A stretch of 64,000 nucleotides of DNA from Chlorokybus atmophyticus (Eukaryota > Plantae > Mesostigma and Chlorokybus algae): assembly GCA_009103225.1 (NCBI GenBank), contig RHPI01002402.1, positions 777,412 to 841,411 on the forward strand, given 5' to 3'. The position numbers were made by a program, and so were the translations under genes. Positions 43,792 through 62,240 of the stretch are shown here, one piece after another. Numbering within the stretch: position 1 is the first letter of the stretch; the number at the start of each line of letters is the position of its first letter. The notes under the pieces are model-generated. The model was not told the DNA's origin. It did no database searches and saw only the letters and a program-made list of their open reading frames with translations.

Positions 43792-45634
43792 TTATGCCTG
43801 ATTGCTGTGACCATTGCGCACTCGCTGTCGCTTGCGGGACTTCGTACTGTTCTGCAAAAACTCAAGAGTTGGCAGCAACACAACAAGAACGCTGTTGACC
43901 CCTTTGTCGACCCCTCCCCCCCATCACAAGAAAACAAACAGAAAAAACGGACGTGCTTGAGGCCCTAGACACTATAACAAGCAGACCTACTCAAAAACTG
44001 TGCAGAACCCAAACCTGGTGCTCTGTTGATGGTTGCACCGGTCCTTTCTTTTTCTTGACTGACAGCGGATTTGGGCCCTGCAACATCACATGGGGATGAG
44101 CCAACCAGATGCAGCTCATGTCGGGAAGACCAGTCGCCCACCTTTGGTCCTTTCCGCTTGCGCTTGTTTATGATTGCTGGAGCGCCAGTCAAGGCTTCAA
44201 CTGGCTGCTGCACGAGCTCTGCAACTTTCAAAGCGGCTCGCTTCAACTCTGCCTCAGATGCTCGCACCTTCTCAGCCTCACTCTGGCAAAGGCAATCTCA
44301 CACACATAAGCACGAGTAACATCTCGGTAGATGCGAAGCTCCACACGCACTTCATTATGCAAAGACTTACACATGCCAAAGTACACAGGCATGCAAACCA
44401 ACCGCGTTGGTCGTAGCAGCATATGAACAAGCATGCGCACCATGTTTGCAAGTTTTCGCTGCGTCTCTGAAGGCGCCTCAAGATGTAACTGTCCATTCTG
44501 AATGGACACAATAGCCACCCCAGGAACCTGCATGGGCGGTTGCTTTCACAGCTGCGCGTACAAGCTCACAACATGTCTACTGATACTGGCTAACGCCAGA
44601 CAACCTTATGGAGCTGTTGCTTGAGCGCTGCGTCTTGCGAAGCAATGAAGAAATGCTCAGGGTTGCCGTTGGCTGCATGCCAGCAGTACAAATTGATTAT
44701 TAACAACTTGCGCACGCATGCTTGAGAACATACAGCCTAACTGCTGCTGGTGTATTCACTTACCGACTAGGGATTGGATGCATGCAGCGGCTGGCACGGG
44801 CGTGTCGTGCGAGCATTTAGCTCCCTCAAACACTCTGGCCGCTTTTGCAGTGCCTAAAAGATGGACAAGATCAATTCTTCGATGTGCAAAGCATGGGTGA
44901 CGCTAAATCATTTCACGTGCACGTTTTGTGCGAGCAAGACGAGATCAAGAAGCAACCCATAAACCTCTATACCTGCGTAGTCAGTGCCAAGGGCTTTGAG
45001 TTCAGCAGTCACACAGCGCGTCACAAACACTTTAGTCGTTGCACCCAGGAACTTGGGAAGAGACTCGCGCAATGCTGCTACTCTGCACAACCAGCCGAGC
45101 AAGCGTCAATCGCCGCTGGGTCTGCAGCCTGAACACGCTGAGGTGCGCTATTCGGCATGATACGAGCTTGGCTTGGCTTGGCTTTCCTAATGCTTGCGCT
45201 GCATGCACACGTGCGGCACTCTCAGGGATGTTGCGTCCTCCCATGAGCCTGTCCTTCTAAACAGTATCAATCGGGACCAAGCTTGCCATTGAACAACTGT
45301 CACGCCATCGGCCGTACACTGAACAATTACAGAAACAGTACAAAAGACGCTGCTTTCTTCCACCCATATCAATGCAACATACCGGCCAACATACTGCACT
45401 GCCTATTTTACGAATTGTCGGAATTGTGTAAGCCGCGTGTATGTGCATGGGACACACTACTTTTAAGGGTGCACACGCAGGTGCACAAGCTTGGTTGCGT
45501 GCTTACTTTGGCAGCGAGAGCGCGTGGTGCAGGAAAGTGCCGTCCACCAGCGCCTTGTAGGGCTCCCTGAAGCCGAAGCAGACGCGGAAGAAACGCACGC
45601 CGCGCCGCACAGCCTTCGCGCGCCCCACGCGCAT
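43792..45634 (-). CDS. UTP23: rRNA-processing protein UTP23 (Fcf1/PIN-like)
   Basis: MRVGRAKAVRRGVRFFRVCFGFREPYKALVDGTFLHHAL, FVTRCVTAELKALG, FFIASQD-like exon, PGVAIVSI..LEAPS, and KRKGPK|GPNPLSVKKKK; ends NGHSNQA*. Confidence 0.9.
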
Positions 45635-46292
45635 GGCCTGCACCACCACGCCGCCGCCGCCGCCGCCACCACGCCGCCAGGTCGGGTAGTTCCACCTCTT
45701 TGTTTTGTGCAAGCGGGGCGTTGTACGCACCGACTTTCACGACTCAGGCTTGTCTGATTTTCGGCAACAGTAGCTCATTGCTCTCTGCCCGACTGTCGGC
45801 TTGTAAACTATCCGCGAGCACACTGTAGCCGGCGGAACGTATCCAGCCGTGGTTTGACACAGAGCGCTTTGGTGTTTTGTTTGTGCACTTGAGATCATAA
45901 TCCCTTTGCTGGACGGCGTTGCTCAAATGTTTCAAAAACATCTGGTCCTGTAGCATCTCACTGCAGCATTGCGGCATGAGAGAAAGCCCTGCACTAAGCT
46001 GTAGCGCGCATGTTGACAGCCACCCCAGAATCCCGATTGCATACATACACACGGCAGCAGTAATTTGCTTGTCAAGCATACATCACATCTATGTTGTCAA
46101 CATGTACATGAAGTACATACTTGATTACCAAGGCAATGAACGAACCACTCTTGCGTCGAGCAAGAACTGAAGGTAACCAAACACATATGACAACACTACA
46201 ACGACACAGCTACAACATCCCTGGCGACATGTGCGAACCCGAGTTCATTGTTAACCCAGTGCACCAACACCATCTGTGCAAAACTGGCTGCA

Positions 46293-46371
46293 TTGCGAAC
46301 TACTGAATAGATCTCAGCCCCACCACACGCACAGGCTTTCGTGGTAGATGCTTCACAGCAGCAGCGCGCAA
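46293..46371 (-). promoter_or_regulatory. Eukaryotic SECIS element, type II, in the 3' UTR
   Basis: Sense RNA: UUGCGCGCUGCUG-CU-GUGA-AGCAUCUACCACG-AAA-GCCUGUGC-G-UGUGGUGGGGCU-GA-G-AUCUAUU-CAGUAGUUCGCAA. Helix I: CUGCUG/CAGUAG plus UUGCG/CGCAA. Core GUGA...GA. Helix II: 12 pairs with one bulged A. AAA lies 13 nt after UGA, followed by a GC/GC mini-stem. Confidence 0.85.
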
Positions 46372-46395
46372 CCCAGCACTTGTCAGACATCGAGC

Positions 46396-47628
46396 CTATC
46401 GCACACGCCTGCTGCGAACTGCTCTCCATTGCGCGAGGACCTTCTTGTGCAAGTCAAGGCTCCAGATGATAGCCACCATTAGCAAGGTGAAACCGGCGTA
46501 TGTGCAGACAATGGTGAACCCGAAGCCGATTGGTGTCAAGCATCCAATGCCATGGCCACAGAAACAAACATGACTGTCTTGATCGCAAGTCCAGCCTTTG
46601 TGGTTGTAACCATCTGGGCTTTGGCATACAGAAGTTCCAGCAGCACCAGCATCCGCAGAACAAGAAGCACCTGGCGAAACTGGCATGCAGCACTGCGCAT
46701 TGTAGTCACTCTTGTACATTGAGGACGACCAGCGGCTGGGCCCGCCTGCCCAGAGCCCTGCATCTTGTAGGACATGCCTACGGCAAAGCATAGACTTGTT
46801 ACAAAAGAACGGAGGATGCATGGATTTTCAAAGTAGTGCACAATAGCGGTAAGCTTGCTTTACCTTGTGAGATCGGCCATGACGAGAGGGATGGCCAATA
46901 GAGTGACATACACAGGGCCGTAGCGCTGCCAGTGGCTGCCTTTACGTTGTGCAGACTTGTGATACAGGTACTGAGCGATGTTAGTGAAGATTGCCAAAGT
47001 GATGCCGAATGTTATAGTGTGCGCAAATGACTTTGACGCTTCCGAAGCTGCAATACCAACCAGGCCTGTGGAAGCAGAGCAACAGAACAAATTGTAGGTG
47101 TGTCAGTGTCCTTGGTTGTGACAGGAGACTGCACTCATTGTGTAGAGCGCACACATGCATGCGCTCGCACACATGCACACGAAGGCATACACATACATGC
47201 ACACGCGCCAACCACACAAACTCAGAGCGTGCATGGAGATTGCCATACCATGTTAGACTAACCTGCAACTAGAAGAGGCCAGCATCAGGAACCCACAAGC
47301 GCAGGTACGGACACTGCCAACGCCAGGATTGCCATGCCAAGAGATGTGCGGTCTTCATCGCTCTGCACGCAACCAGAAATCTACACAACACCTTCATGCA
47401 AGCATTCTGTCATGTGGGGCGTGCAGAGCGGCGTGCACAGGTAATTGTGAGACGTAACATAAGAGCAGGCAAACACGCAACTCCTACCTTGATGTCGGTT
47501 TCAACACCCGCCCTTCCATCATCATTGACGGCCCGGACGGGTGGCCGCACTCATGTGACACATTCTTCCTCTCCCTGTTCCGGATCAACCTCCGATGACG
47601 CTGGAGGAAGCAGCGCCTCGCTACTCAT
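46396..47628 (-). CDS. Candidate membrane selenoprotein (MSP-like), 274 aa, two in-frame UGA codons (U26, U73), about 4 TM segments
   Basis: Exons 47628-47488 (141 nt), 47362-47263 (100), 47065-46864 (202) and 46777-46396 (382) total 825 nt, all GT-AG and in phase. The only internal stops are TGA at 47553-47551 and 47287-47285. A SECIS lies downstream. Core motif HWQRYGPVYVTLLAIPLVMADLTRHVLQD. Confidence 0.8.
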
Positions 47629-48836
47629 CGCGCCCGACAAGCAGCTGCAAGCACAAGGCAAACTCGTCAGCAGCTTACCACACCCAAAATGAGACCAGCC
47701 AGACTGCATGCACGTTAGGCAGGCAGCATCGTGCGGCCGTTTTTGAGCAACAAGTACGCCAAAACTGACTGCTAACCTCGCTGACTCTACTCACAATGCT
47801 CACGTCTCCCACGCCTCTAGCCCAACACAAGCACTCGCCCCCGCCCCCGCCGCCGCCGCTGCTCACGGCCAAACCCCAATAGCCGTCAGGCTACAATCAA
47901 CAGCCATTGATGGCAACAGGTCAAAAAAGCTCAAAAAGCGACAGTACGCATTCAAAAAGAAGGCCTCAATGTCCAGGTGTTTTAGGCCCCAGCCTGCGCA
48001 GGAATACAACTTTAATGAAGTTGAAGACGAAACTTTGTTCACGCACGAGGTTGGCTGATAGACTGCCAGTGACAGTGTGATAATGACCGCGAGCTGCGTG
48101 ACAGGTGAGAACAGGTGATAAGCTCGACCGCCGACGTGGACCTCACCGCGCGCGCGCGCGCGCGTTTCACCGCTACTATGTTGCAATGATTCATTCCCAA
48201 AGCGAAAGTCCCGACACTTTACTAACTTTTCCGTCACTGCTATCCGTCTGCACAAAGTCCGCTGCTCAGCTAAGGGGTCGAAAGTGTCTATCCCGCGATG
48301 TGCTTTTCGTGCTCATCCGTTTCTGGCTGACGCCAGCAGCGGTGAAGTGTTCCTGCTCGGGACGCTGTGTAGGGAGCGGCGGCGGTGGTGGCGGCGGCGG
48401 AAGAGCGCAGGAGCTGTGGGCCGAGGGAGTTTAAGCTCAGGTTCAACCGGAATTTGGTGTGTGGGATTGTTTGTCTGTGGTTGGTGACAAAAAGGAAGCG
48501 AGGGGCTTGTTGGCAAGTGGTTGGTTAGGTGGATCGTCGCATTGAAGGTCGAGCTGGTCGGGAGAAAGGTCATACGCTGCTGTGAATTTTTACGCTTTGG
48601 AGAAGCATAGTGGAGCGAGCGCCTTTGGCTTGGTTGGTACTGGAGCACCGCAACCTGTGTATTGTTGGTAGCTCTGTAGCTTTGGCGCTTCAAGTGCCAA
48701 CAAGGTCCACTGTGTCCTCAGTTGGAGGCGTGCAGCTGCCTTTGTTTCAGCGGAGAGTAGTCAGCTCTGCGCAGTTGGGCATTCCTTGTGAGAATGGGCA
48801 CATGTTGACAGCGGAGGCCTTGCCGCCTCCGCGCGG

Positions 48837-51800
48837 ATGGAGCGTGAGGGTGAGGCGGCGGTTGGGAGGTTTCCCATCGGGCCCAGCAGCGTGTATGGCC
48901 GCCTACTGGCAGTACGGATCTTGTGCAGTACTCGGCTGAGGCTATGGACGGACCTGTTCCTGGCGATCGTGCAGAGGCGGTTCAAGAAGGTGACCACGGC
49001 TTTGAGCTACGTTGGGAGGAGTTTGGCGCAGAGGTTGGATCCGCGCAATCCTCTGAGCTTGGTGGCAGCTGCGGCGCTTGTGCTATGGCTGTCCCATCGT
49101 GCTCGCCTTGGCCAGGCGCAGCGCCAGCTCAAGCGTGCTCGTGTAAAGTACTACACTCAGCAGATGGCACGCGCAAATTGCTATGATGAGTGGTACCAGG
49201 CTGCGCGAGCACTTGATAACTTGCAAGTGAGTGCTAATGATGCCACAATGTTCGTTCAGTCATGTCGCTCCCATCAAGTGTCGTGGCAATGTAGCAGTTG
49301 GGACACATCAAGCCAAATGCCAATTCACCAGTGTCAGTTGCAAAAGGTCTCCATCTTGTAGTCTCTTTAAACTCAGGCATTAGTGCTGCAGCTTTGTACA
49401 TGGTTGTTTCATTATACACGTTATTGCAAGGTCAAACCTGCTGTCAGGCTGAGGCTGTTCACAGTATGCATGCTGTAGCATACGTGTTGTTGGTTTCATC
49501 TTATGTACCAACATCGTCAGCTGTTGCTGCGCTTCTTGTAGGCACACTCATTTGTTGTCGAACAATGAACACTTGCATAGGTGTCTGTTTGAGGGTCATC
49601 ATGCACATGTTGCAAACTTTTGATTGAGTGCAGTATGAGGGTGAAGACGAAAGAAAAGTGGATATGCGGTTTTATGATGTTGAGCTGGTTGAGGACCGTT
49701 TGCAAAAGATGGTGAAGCTGCGAGAGGAAGGCAACATTGGTGAAATGGTTTTCTGCCTGCGAGCTGACCTTCTGCGCAACCTTGGAGGCTTATGCAACCC
49801 GCAGTTACACAAATCGCGCCTTACCACTCCTCACACGATACAAGAATACATACACGAGGTCCTAGCACAGCATGCTTTTTAGCAGCCACAAGTGGTTGCT
49901 TGTTTAGCTTGCATCACATCATCCAGCTTGCCATTAATCTCATTGTAGCATTATGCCACTACACATGTGGAGCACTTTTGTGAGTTAACAGGGGCGTACA
50001 ATGGCAAGTTAAGCTATTTGTTGACAGGTTACTCTACAGCTGAAGTACGTCTGCAACTACGACTTTCCAGACTTCCCCCTGGAGGAGAAGCTGGCATTCT
50101 TCCATGAGACACGCCACGCTTTCGGGCGCACAGCGCTGCTATTCAGTGGAGGTGCTGCTCTTGGCTCCTTTCACCTCGGGGTGATGAAAGCACTTGTGGA
50201 GCACAAGCTCCTGCCGCGCGTCATTGCAGGCTCAAGTGTAGGGTCCATTGTTTGTTCCTTCACTGCAACCCGCACGCAAGAGGAGCTTGAAGCATTCTTC
50301 AAAGGCCCGCTTCCTGACATGATATTCTTTGCTGAGGTGCGAGTTCAAGTTATCCCATGCCAATCCCAGCAATCTGACACTAAGTCAGGACGCTGACTGC
50401 AAGAATTGTTGTTGCACTGTTGGACATTGCAGTGCAATCTGTCGTGTGTTGCGTATTGGGNNNNNNNNNNNNNNNNNNNNNNNNNNNNNNNNNNNNNNNN
50501 NNNNNNNNNNNNNNNNNNNNNNNNNNNNNNNNNNNNNNNNNNNNNNNNNNNNNNNNNNNNNNNNNNNNNNNNNNNNNNNNNNNNNNNNNNNGGGGGAGGG
50601 GGCATGGCTCTTTAAATTCGTGTCTGCTGTGGTTCATACAGTTTCCTTGTTACACTACCTGACCACTGCCGTTATTGGCAGGTTGGGTCTCTCCTTAGGT
50701 TTGCACGGAGGCTTGTAACAAAAGGAGCTTTGCACGAAATAGGTACTCTGCAAAAGAGGATGCGCAGCTTGATTGGGGATTTGACATTCCAGGAGGCGTT
50801 CGACATATCTGGTCGCATACTGGGCATATCTGTGTGCTCCATGCGACAGCATGAGGCCCCCCGCCTGCTCAACTACCTCACATCACCACATGTTGTCATC
50901 TGGAGCGCTGTTGCTGCATCATGCGCCTTTCCTGGGCTATTTGAGGCTCAAGAACTGCTGGCAAAGGATCGAGAGGTGCGTGGCAGCAGTTGCGGACAGA
51001 AGGGAATGCGGTGCAGATTCATGCAAGGAGTATGTTGCTGATTCTCTTGTGCACATGGTCACAGGGACGGTTGGTTCCATTCCACATAGGGGAGCACGAC
51101 GGGGATGGTCGTGGTCTCACATCACGCAAGTGGCGCGATGGTAGCGTTGAGGAGGATCTGCCGATGACAAGCCTGAAAGAGTTGTTCAACGTCAACCATT
51201 TTGTCGTGAGCCAGGCAAACCCACACATAGCCCCTATCCTGCGGCTGAAAGAAATATTGCGCCAGTCGGGTGGTCCATATGTTGGCCACGCCATGCACAT
51301 GTTGGAGATGGAGGTGAAGCATCGTCTCAAACAGCTGATAGAGATGGGCATTGGGAGCAAGGGGATCGCCAAAATCCTTGCTCAGGTGCAGTGGCTGTTG
51401 TATCATATAATTGTTCATGAAGGCGGTTGTGTTGTGACTTCAGCAACACCAACTCACATCAACCAATTCATGCCTGCTACAGGATTGGGAGGGGGATATC
51501 ACAATTGTAATGCCTGCAACCTTGTATCAAATGTACAAAATTATTCAAAACCCCACAAAAGAAGATGTCCAGCTTGGCAGCATCATGGGAGAGCGATGCA
51601 CTTGGGCCAAGCTGTCATCCATACGCGCGAATTGTGCAATTGAGATGGCCCTTGACGAGTGCGTACAGGAGCTGAAGGCAAAGCGTAAGTTGCTGTATGG
51701 CCGCAGTCACGGGCGTGGGTTTGACGGCAGACAGCGCATTCCTTCATGGAATACCTTACTGCGCCCGCAGTCGGTTGGCTCACTGTCAGATGGCGAGGAC

Positions 51801-60699: not shown

Positions 60700-61458
60700 N
60701 NNNNNNNNNNNNNNNNNNNNNNNNNNNNNNNNNNNNNNNNNNNNNNNNNNNNNNNNNNNNNNNNNNNNNNNNNNNNNNNNNNNNNNNNNNNNNNNNNNNN
60801 NNNNNNNNNNNNNNNNNNNNNNNNNNNNNNNNNNNNNNNNNNNNNNNNNNNNNNNNNNNNNNNNNNNNNNNNNNNNNNNNNNNNNNNNNNNNNNNNNNNN
60901 NNNNNNNNNNNNNNNNNNNNNNNNNNNNNNNNNNNNNNNNNNNNNNNNNNNNNNNNNNNNNNNNNNNNNNNNNNNNNNNNNNNNNNNNNNNNNNNNNNNN
61001 NNNNNNNNNNNNNNNNNNNNNNNNNNNNNNNNNNNNNNNNNNNNNNNNNNNNNNNNNNNNNNNNNNNNNNNNNNNNNNNNNNNNNNNNNNNNNNNNNNNN
61101 NNNNNNNNNNNNNNNNNNNNNNNNNNNNNNNNNNNNNNNNNNNNNNNNNNNNNNNNNNNNNNNNNNNNNNNNNNNNNNNNNNNNNNNNNNNNNNNNNNNN
61201 NNNNNNNNNNNNNNNNNNNNNNNNNNNNNNNNNNNNNNNNNNNNNNNNNNNNNNNNNNNNNNNNNNNNNNNNNNNNNNNNNNNNNNNNNNNNNNNNNNNN
61301 NNNNNNNNNNNNNNNNNNNNNNNNNNNNNNNNNNNNNNNNNNNNNNNNNNNNNNNNNNNNNNNNNNNNNNNNNNNNNNNNNNNNNNNNNNNNNNNNNNNN
61401 NNNNNNNNNNNNNNNNNNNNNNNNNNNNNNNNNNNNNNNNNNNNNNNNNNNNNNNNNG
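60700..61458. other. Assembly gap (N)
   Basis: 759 N characters. Confidence 0.99.
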
Positions 61459-61899: not shown

Positions 61900-62240
61900 A
61901 AATCTATGCCTGCAATCTATCTTACGTTATCATGAGCGTCCGCAATGCCACATTGCCTACTTTGATAAACTGGTTGGGAGGGCAAGCTGTGGTGGTCAGT
62001 GCTGCGCACGCGGCCGTGGTCGCCCTCTTCCTTAGTGCATTGAGCAGGCTGCAGCGCAAGAGATCCGCTACCTTTGGATAAATGTATTTCGGGCCCCTCG
62101 AGGGCTTCAGTCAGTGCTGCGCACGCGGCCGTGGTCGCCCTCTTCCTTAGTGCAATGAGCAGGCTGCAGCGCAAGAGATCCGCTACCTTTGGATAAATGT
62201 ATTTCGGGCCCCTCGAGGGCTTCATGTTCAATGTCGAAAT
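61900..62240 (+). mobile_element. Possible degenerate GIY-YIG endonuclease remnant (Penelope-like)
   Basis: Across frameshifts: CNLSYVI / ERPQCHIAYFDK and RLQRK / EIRYLWINVFRAPRGL. These resemble the NxxYxIxCxxCxxxYIG and RxxxExxWIxxxxTxxPxGLN motifs of PLE endonucleases. Confidence 0.35.
61996..62223. repeat. 115-bp-period near-identical tandem duplication
   Basis: tcagtgctgcgcacgcgg...cccctcgagggcttc starts at 61996 and 62111, with one substitution (cattg vs caatg). Confidence 0.95.

Follow-up and report, generated by a model that had tools for sequence, protein, structure and literature searches.

A predicted two-selenocysteine membrane selenoprotein gene of the MSP family in the streptophyte alga Chlorokybus atmophyticus

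The 64,000-nt stretch of Chlorokybus atmophyticus contig RHPI01002402.1 analysed here (the window) carries on its minus strand an expressed gene for a predicted membrane selenoprotein of the MSP family. Two apparent stop codons in this gene, TGA at codons 26 and 73, almost certainly encode selenocysteine (Sec; U in motifs), judging from the pattern of conservation around them. The mRNA of about 1.2 kb has five exons, four of them coding, and was recovered in two independent transcriptome assemblies. Its 274-codon frame, from the ATG at 47628 to the TAG at 46398-46396, is open only if both TGA26 and TGA73 are decoded; in the remaining two mRNA frames, stops are numerous. A first-pass annotation made from the DNA letters had proposed four coding exons joined in phase into 274 codons, with each internal TGA close to a cysteine (Cys23-x-x-U26 and U73-Cys74). 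Spliced translation reproduced this frame, with both motifs in place. Ordinary gene calling would truncate such a gene.

Transcript evidence comes from RNA contigs aligned to positions 45500-48500, chiefly X1 from a 2013 study (1203 nt) and X2 from a 2021 study (1189 nt). Among six RNA runs, two contain about 0.6 of the sampled words of the stretch, as a spliced transcript would. The X1 and X2 contigs both contain the joints 46777/46864, 47065/47263, and 47362/47488, which match exactly the three junctions that had been predicted. All skipped parts run from GT to AG on the minus strand, indicating that the contigs are derived from RNA. Both contigs also share the joint 47644/47777, which reveals a 132-nt intron within the 5' untranslated region (UTR); the first-pass exon set was therefore correct at the coding junctions and missed this upstream intron (47776-47645). 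A short contig from a third run (X4) spans the 47065/47263 joint and includes TGA73. No base differs between the window and the X1 and X2 contigs, indicating that both UGAs are kept unedited in the mRNA. A "gttcct" donor that would remove TGA73, named beforehand as the splicing pattern that would undo the selenoprotein reading, is absent from the RNA contigs, which may hide rare isoforms. The 5' UTR is 78 nt long and AUG-free, with in-frame stops upstream in the spliced translation, so that the AUG at 47628 is the first start; it has a G at -3. Transcript 3' ends at 46096 and 46106 give a 3' UTR reaching about 300 nt past the TAG.

A stem-loop resembling a selenocysteine insertion sequence (SECIS) lies within this RNA-confirmed 3' UTR. 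Helix I pairs 46377-46359 with 46305-46286 (about 18 bp). Across an internal loop, the core GUGA (46356-46353) stands opposite a 3' GA (46315-46314), and helix II pairs 46352-46340 with 46327-46316 over 12-13 bp, the 5' strand being 13 nt long. The apex has an unpaired AAA (46339-46337) followed by a mini-stem with a 4-nt loop, giving a form-2 layout. In Ostreococcus SECIS elements, a G ahead of the quartet is the rule, and green algae usually have it (PMC2375036). Helix I starts 19 nt and the GUGA core 39 nt past the TAG; a SECIS-like hairpin is present after the stop codon as had been proposed, but not at the 25-nt distance given for its start.

The element was evaluated with our own SECISearch-like descriptor, which asks for R-UGA, AA 9-13 nt on, and a GA on the 3' side, along with a helix I duplex and a helix II that obeys set constraints. 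Applied in its strict form to both strands of the whole window (128 kb), it returned 11 matches, with the element at the top (-42.2 versus -25.9 kcal/mol for the next). Dinucleotide-preserving shuffles of the window (25 in all) gave a mean of 8 matches each, the best at -33.0 kcal/mol, and none of them reached -35. A match of this quality is therefore expected less than once per ~3 Mb, and the element sits within a 3' UTR of 300 nt. The second descriptor match, an AUGA hairpin at 51568-51618 on the minus strand with -25.9 kcal/mol, was judged to be a chance match: its energy is in the range of the shuffles, and it is antisense to a patatin-like open reading frame (ORF; 50990-51643, plus strand).

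To place the protein among its relatives, we used the fourth coding exon alone (126 amino acids [aa], Sec-free) as the query of an exhaustive HMMER search (E ≤ 1e-3), which found 79 relatives. A gene model of Mesostigma viride ranks first (E 1.7e-30, 52% identity), and a transcript ORF of Pterosperma sp. CCMP1384 (E 2.7e-24) and a protein of Mastigamoeba balamuthi (E 1.6e-9) are also among them. Most of the 79 are 130-230 aa long and start just past the Sec position, as is usual for gene callers that meet a TGA. A word-indexed protein search with the same exon returned nothing, its length window of 69-220 aa probably excluding most relatives.

We fetched the DNA for several of the HMMER matches and translated it upstream in frame. 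TGA occurs at both aligned positions in five other lineages. The Pterosperma transcript (L001) reads M...E-E-D-C-T-D-(TGA) and then I-P-A-L-V-G-A-(TGA)-C-W-P; in a Tara metatranscriptome contig the first site is E-E-D-C-A-T-(TGA) and the second is identical. Three metagenome contigs share A-E-C-R-D-(TGA) and I-P-A-L-I-G-A-(TGA)-C-W-P, and a Mamiellophyceae-like contig (L012) has D-E-C-A-S-(TGA)-V-R-P and A-P-S-L-I-G-A-(TGA)-C-W-P. In the two-TGA relatives, the frame is open from an upstream ATG across both TGAs, with no TAA or TAG. Sources L001, L007-9, L010/11, and L012 have C-x-x-TGA in an acidic N-terminal tail (N-tail), and the second site is TGA in six independent DNA sources (the same four plus L002 and L006). 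Only the second TGA can be read in L002, which is cut before the N terminus, and in L006, a genomic sequence whose upstream exons are missing. Cys-Cys replaces U-C at the second site in two full-length relatives, P0018 (a EukProt transcript) and P0087 (Chlamydomonas sp. UWO241). The first-pass annotation had asked whether U26 and U73 align with TGA or Cys in homologs; where both positions can be read, the homologs have TGA at both or Cys at the second. A TGA kept between conserved residues, alternation with Cys, and a SECIS downstream are the classical sequence signature of Sec.

The relaxed version of the descriptor finds SECIS-like hairpins in the 3' regions of L001 (two), L002, L007/L009, and L012 (GUGA type). 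The strict version found none of these homolog elements, and it is on the strict version that the chance estimate for the window rests. The two hairpins in the 3' UTR of the Pterosperma CCMP1384 MSP transcript (L001:1308-1357 and L001:1500-1549) are in tandem, of AUGA type, and clearly paralogous.

MSP is a predicted membrane selenoprotein reported only from Ostreococcus, Chlamydomonas, Volvox, and Dictyostelium (Lobanov et al. 2007, Genome Biol 8:R198, PMC2375036). Its authors wrote that MSP "had two Sec residues", and in Dictyostelium it gave a 75Se-labelled band (PMC2375036). All five sequences of the published alignment contain L-V-G-[SA]-U-C-W-P, and the alignment further shows the blocks H-W-x-R-Y-G-P, R-H-V-L-Q-D, S-S-M-Y, and C-L-S..G..F-T..T-Y-x-G-F (PMC2375036). 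An N-terminal Sec, in D-C-E-G-G-V-U, is found in Dictyostelium alone among the five (PMC2375036). In a later survey, which covered neither Chlorokybus nor Mesostigma, MSP is listed as an almost exclusively Sec-containing algal family (Jiang et al. 2020, BMC Genomics 21:699, PMC7539508).

We compared the window protein with the published sequences by eye, from the supplement alignment. Its first hydrophobic segment reads V-P-A-L-V-G-S-(TGA)-C-W-P-L-L-V-A-G and so contains the MSP signature, and the protein carries the H-W-x-R-Y-G-P, R-H-V-L-Q-D, S-S-M-Y, and C-L-[ST]..G..F-T..T-Y-x-G-F blocks. With the family it shares the signature [IVL]-P-[AS]-L-V-G-[SA]-U-C-W-P in the first hydrophobic segment together with a SECIS in the 3' UTR. 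With the Dictyostelium protein in particular it shares two predicted Sec residues, one near the N terminus after a Cys and one in U-C-W-P, although the N-tail spacing is C-x4-U in Dictyostelium and C-x-x-U in the window protein. Two further differences set it apart: the published members come from chlorophytes and Dictyostelium only, whereas the window gene belongs to a streptophyte alga, and all five published MSPs lack an insertion that separates S-S-M-Y from C-L-T in the window protein and comprises ~55 residues, 8 of them Cys. The insertion is common to Mesostigma, Pterosperma, and several environmental relatives, which defines a long-loop, Cys-rich MSP subfamily.

Judged by its sequence, the window gene has every feature by which the MSP family is recognized. 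The family had been guessed in the first-pass annotation, which also held that the novelty might be the streptophyte member and not the family; the published alignment, with the same L-V-G-S-U-C-W-P signature and C-terminal blocks, and the 2007 date of publication agree with both. The gene is a new and apparently undescribed streptophyte member of this family, which has been known since 2007, and does not represent a new kind. The Dictyostelium MSP is the only one for which the N-terminal C-x-x-U Sec has been published; this Sec is now seen widely in the green lineage, suggesting that the two-Sec architecture is probably old. The Mamiellophyceae-like MSP at L012:140-922 resembles the published Ostreococcus MSPs and has an in-frame C-A-S-(TGA)-V-R-P ~60 codons ahead of the family signature. 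The 2007 Ostreococcus models begin only ~13 residues before the first transmembrane segment (TM1) and may miss an N-terminal Sec.

We therefore consider it very probable that the locus is an expressed five-exon MSP gene in which UGA26 and UGA73 are both recoded to Sec by one GUGA-type, form-2 SECIS. Several observations weigh against this reading. The SECIS mini-stem has just 2 bp, and the Rfam covariance models report no SECIS family on the gene region even at E ≤ 10. Rfam cmscan of seven homolog loci likewise reports no SECIS family, despite clear SECIS-like hairpins there, so that the miss at the window element carries little weight. The N-tail is poorly conserved outside C-x-x-U, and neither the published Chlamydomonas, Volvox, and Ostreococcus models nor the two Cys forms have this motif, making Sec26 less certain than Sec73.

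The same features of the N-tail would fit a protein with Sec73 only, in which the 25-codon ORF ending at UGA26 is an upstream ORF and either Met57 (M-A-I-L-A-L) or a non-AUG codon serves as the true start. The published Ostreococcus, Chlamydomonas, and Volvox models, which have a single U and N termini that are short or Cys-free, also agree with such an arrangement. However, C-x-x-TGA is aligned in an acidic context in the five other lineages, where an upstream ATG opens a frame that continues through both TGAs, the Dictyostelium MSP has an N-terminal Sec as well, Met57 is not conserved among the relatives, and the AUG at 47628 is the first and has its G at -3. We regard the one-Sec protein as improbable.

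It is even less probable that both TGAs are true stops, yielding short peptides or a 131-residue product from Met144, with the hairpin present by chance. The silence of the Rfam SECIS models would be expected in that case, as would the plain minimum free energy z-score of the hairpin, which is just -1.3. Yet amino acids are conserved ahead of Met144 and to either side of each TGA, U alternates with Cys at codon 73 within a signature identical to that of a proven MSP, and the SECIS-like elements in homologs and the shuffle control argue against chance. A decaying pseudogene of a Cys-containing membrane protein is hardly credible: TGA is one base from TGC and TGT, and Cys forms of the family exist, but two studies show expression and correct splicing of the gene, which runs for 274 codons with no other stop or frameshift, has the same two TGAs as distant lineages, and retains its SECIS-like element.

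Table 1. Features of the MSP gene and of its predicted product
Feature	Position	Strand	Basis
5' UTR exon 1; transcript start at or beyond 47838	47777..47838	-	X1/X2 contig pieces
5' UTR intron, 132 nt, GT..AG	47645..47776	-	joint in two runs
Exon 2: remaining 5' UTR and codons 1-47; ATG 47628-47626	47488..47644	-	RNA, translation
TGA codon 26, predicted Sec, E-E-E-C-V-T-U-V-R-P	47551..47553	-	translation, homologs
Intron, 125 nt	47363..47487	-	joint 47362/47488
Exon 3: codons 48-81 (base 1 of 81); bulk of the kinked first membrane segment	47263..47362	-	RNA, translation
TGA codon 73, predicted Sec, V-P-A-L-V-G-S-U-C-W-P (MSP signature)	47285..47287	-	translation, homologs, published alignment
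Intron, 197 nt, with a TG-rich microsatellite-like stretch inside	47066..47262	-	joint in X1, X2, X4
Exon 4: codons 81-148; end of TM1, TM2, basic loop H-W-Q-R-Y-G-P, TM3	46864..47065	-	RNA, translation
Intron, 86 nt	46778..46863	-	joint 46777/46864
Last exon, coding part: codons 148-274 and TAG (46398-46396)	46396..46777	-	translation
Coding exons	47628-47488, 47362-47263, 47065-46864, 46777-46396	-	spliced translation
3' UTR, ~300 nt	46096..46395	-	two contig ends
SECIS-like stem-loop	46286..46377	-	fold, descriptor scan, shuffles
Acidic N-tail, net charge -9	residues 1-55		hydropathy/charge
32-residue hydrophobic segment broken by G-S-U-C-W-P	residues 56-87		hydropathy/charge
TM2	residues 96-115		hydropathy/charge
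Basic loop, net charge +4	residues 116-131		hydropathy/charge
TM3	residues 132-150		hydropathy/charge
78-residue loop, 8 Cys	residues 151-228		hydropathy/charge
TM4	residues 229-254		hydropathy/charge
Basic C-terminal tail, net charge +6	after TM4		hydropathy/charge

Chlorokybus atmophyticus has been reported to possess the complete Sec machinery (eEFSec, PSTK, SBP2, and SecS) but only three selenoproteins, and from such low counts it was concluded that subaerial algae shed selenoproteins (Liang et al. 2019, PMC6627142). Neither the main text nor the consulted supplement text of that report names MSP. TGA is the commonest ordinary stop codon of Chlorokybus (PMC6627142), indicating that the codon is not reassigned genome-wide. 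Within the window, ARAGORN finds no tRNA, and there is no Sec-decoding gene. The MSP gene adds a selenoprotein beyond the three credited to this alga and suggests that the published count is an underestimate, due to profile-based searches and to gene callers that stop at TGA. Recoding would follow the standard eukaryotic route through SBP2, eEFSec, and tRNA-Sec.

We predict that the 274-residue product crosses the membrane with four helices. Its last exon encodes the R-H-V-L-Q-D block, the Cys-rich loop (8 Cys, about 46537-46770), TM4, and the basic C-terminal tail. Under the positive-inside rule, the cytosolic parts are predicted to be the N-tail, the loop at 116-131, and the C-terminal tail, with the Cys-rich loop outside or lumenal, a topology that would place Sec73-Cys74 within the membrane. 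An AlphaFold2 model of a Cys-form homolog, built from the family alignment, has four long helices (mean predicted local distance difference test score 78, predicted template modelling score 0.66), and its CC pair is at the break between helix 31-58 and helix 62-69. Nearly invariant in the family are the Asp, His, and Asp of A-D-x-x-R-H-x-x-x-D, a Tyr, the Cys of C-L-[ST], and T-Y-x-G.

In the mechanism that we propose, the acidic cytosolic N-tail bears C-x-x-U, and the long first membrane segment would be kinked at G-S-U-C-W-P, holding the Sec-Cys pair inside the membrane. This pair may be the working centre, a selenolate/thiolate pair that would either cycle through a selenenylsulfide in redox chemistry or bind a soft electrophile and hand it on. 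The C-x-x-U of the N-tail could then act as an accessory, mobile partner on the cytosolic side. Provided that the protein is made, a redox role is a tentative assignment falling slightly short of an even chance; some other role altogether is possible but less likely, and a soft-metal or metalloid relay is a little more doubtful than that. We infer that a redox cycle via a selenenylsulfide is somewhat likelier than the relay. A bolder proposal, which we think unlikely, combines two ideas: that the U-C-W-P pair and the C-x-x-U tail form a Mer-like relay moving a soft metal or selenium species across or along the membrane, in place of a conventional oxidoreductase, and that the two-Sec form found in Amoebozoa and several green lineages is ancestral, with chlorophytes later simplified to one Sec or to Cys-Cys.

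Searches for folds and domains lend these guesses at function no support from homology. No Pfam family is found in the exon pieces or in 19 family members, Foldseek against the PDB gives no relative (best E 0.43), and a wide VIA-align search gives generic helical bundles only (Z up to 8). Among AlphaFold DB clusters, Foldseek ranks unnamed family members first (e.g., C5LCF3 and C1MVT5), followed by weak MerC-domain rows at E 0.3-0.5. An ESM Atlas feature search places the Cys-form MSP nearest to MerT/MerF clusters, with a score of 0.80 that serves as a lead only. Homology to Mer proteins was rejected: hhalign of the MSP alignment gives a probability of <0.1% against the MerT, MerC, and MerE of plasmid R100, and no Mer Pfam family appears in any of the 19 MSP members at E ≤ 10.

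MSP is one of the few eukaryotic selenoprotein families that lack a known function and have a Sec predicted inside a membrane helix. With the wider, better-aligned family and the Cys-form model, knock-outs and tests for metal or redox functions become easier to plan in Chlamydomonas or Dictyostelium.

Several other features of the window lie outside the coding sequence of the MSP gene. The TG/GC-rich, microsatellite-like intron stretch at 47135-47206 (minus strand) has weak, sub-threshold Rfam rows for mir-297, mir-2060, and sno_ZL1, which look spurious. The downstream neighbour gene (45507-45635, minus strand) has a word depth of 200-720, versus 16-34 for the MSP gene in the same transcriptomes, and two A>G differences in run X3 within this neighbour suggest that X3 is a different strain or a cryptic species. 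At ~60700-61450, GC is 0.000 across at least 500 bases, which looks like a run of N (an assembly gap) and not AT-rich DNA. Just past this gap, 61995-62224 is an exact tandem duplication (115-bp unit, 2.0 copies, 99% match) that may be an assembly artefact at the gap edge.

Among known systems, the Mer transporters (MerT, MerF, MerC, and MerE) resemble MSP as small membrane proteins built of helices, whose TM1 has a vicinal or C-x-x-C pair ahead of a Pro, as in the R100 motifs T-C-C-L-G-P-L-V-L of MerT, C-A-A-C-F-P-A-L of MerC, and C-P-C-H-L-P-I-L of MerE. MerT also has a second pair on the cytosolic side. In contrast, the number and length of the helices differ, and MSP is eukaryotic, with no mer operon context; the likeness is at the level of motifs and features only.

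SELENOK and SELENOS are likewise small membrane selenoproteins with Sec on a flexible, probably disordered cytosolic tail, and in algae they are nearly always Sec forms (PMC7539508). Unlike MSP, they have a single TM helix with Sec near the C terminus and no intramembrane Sec, and Pfam scans show no sequence similarity between them and MSP. In the C-terminal G-C-U-G of thioredoxin reductase, the adjacent Cys and Sec can form a selenenylsulfide that exchanges electrons with a second, dithiol-type centre. MSP resembles this enzyme by analogy only, through an adjacent Cys and Sec that could form a selenenylsulfide and through a second centre; the reductase has a flavoprotein domain and its pair, in the order C-U, is on a soluble tail, whereas the predicted U-C pair of MSP is inside a membrane helix and no flavoprotein domain is present. 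Multiple UGAs are decoded per mRNA in SELENOP and SELENOL. These proteins are unrelated to MSP, and the window gene has a single SECIS-like element; it is the Pterosperma MSP transcript, with its two tandem SECIS-like elements, that resembles SELENOP.

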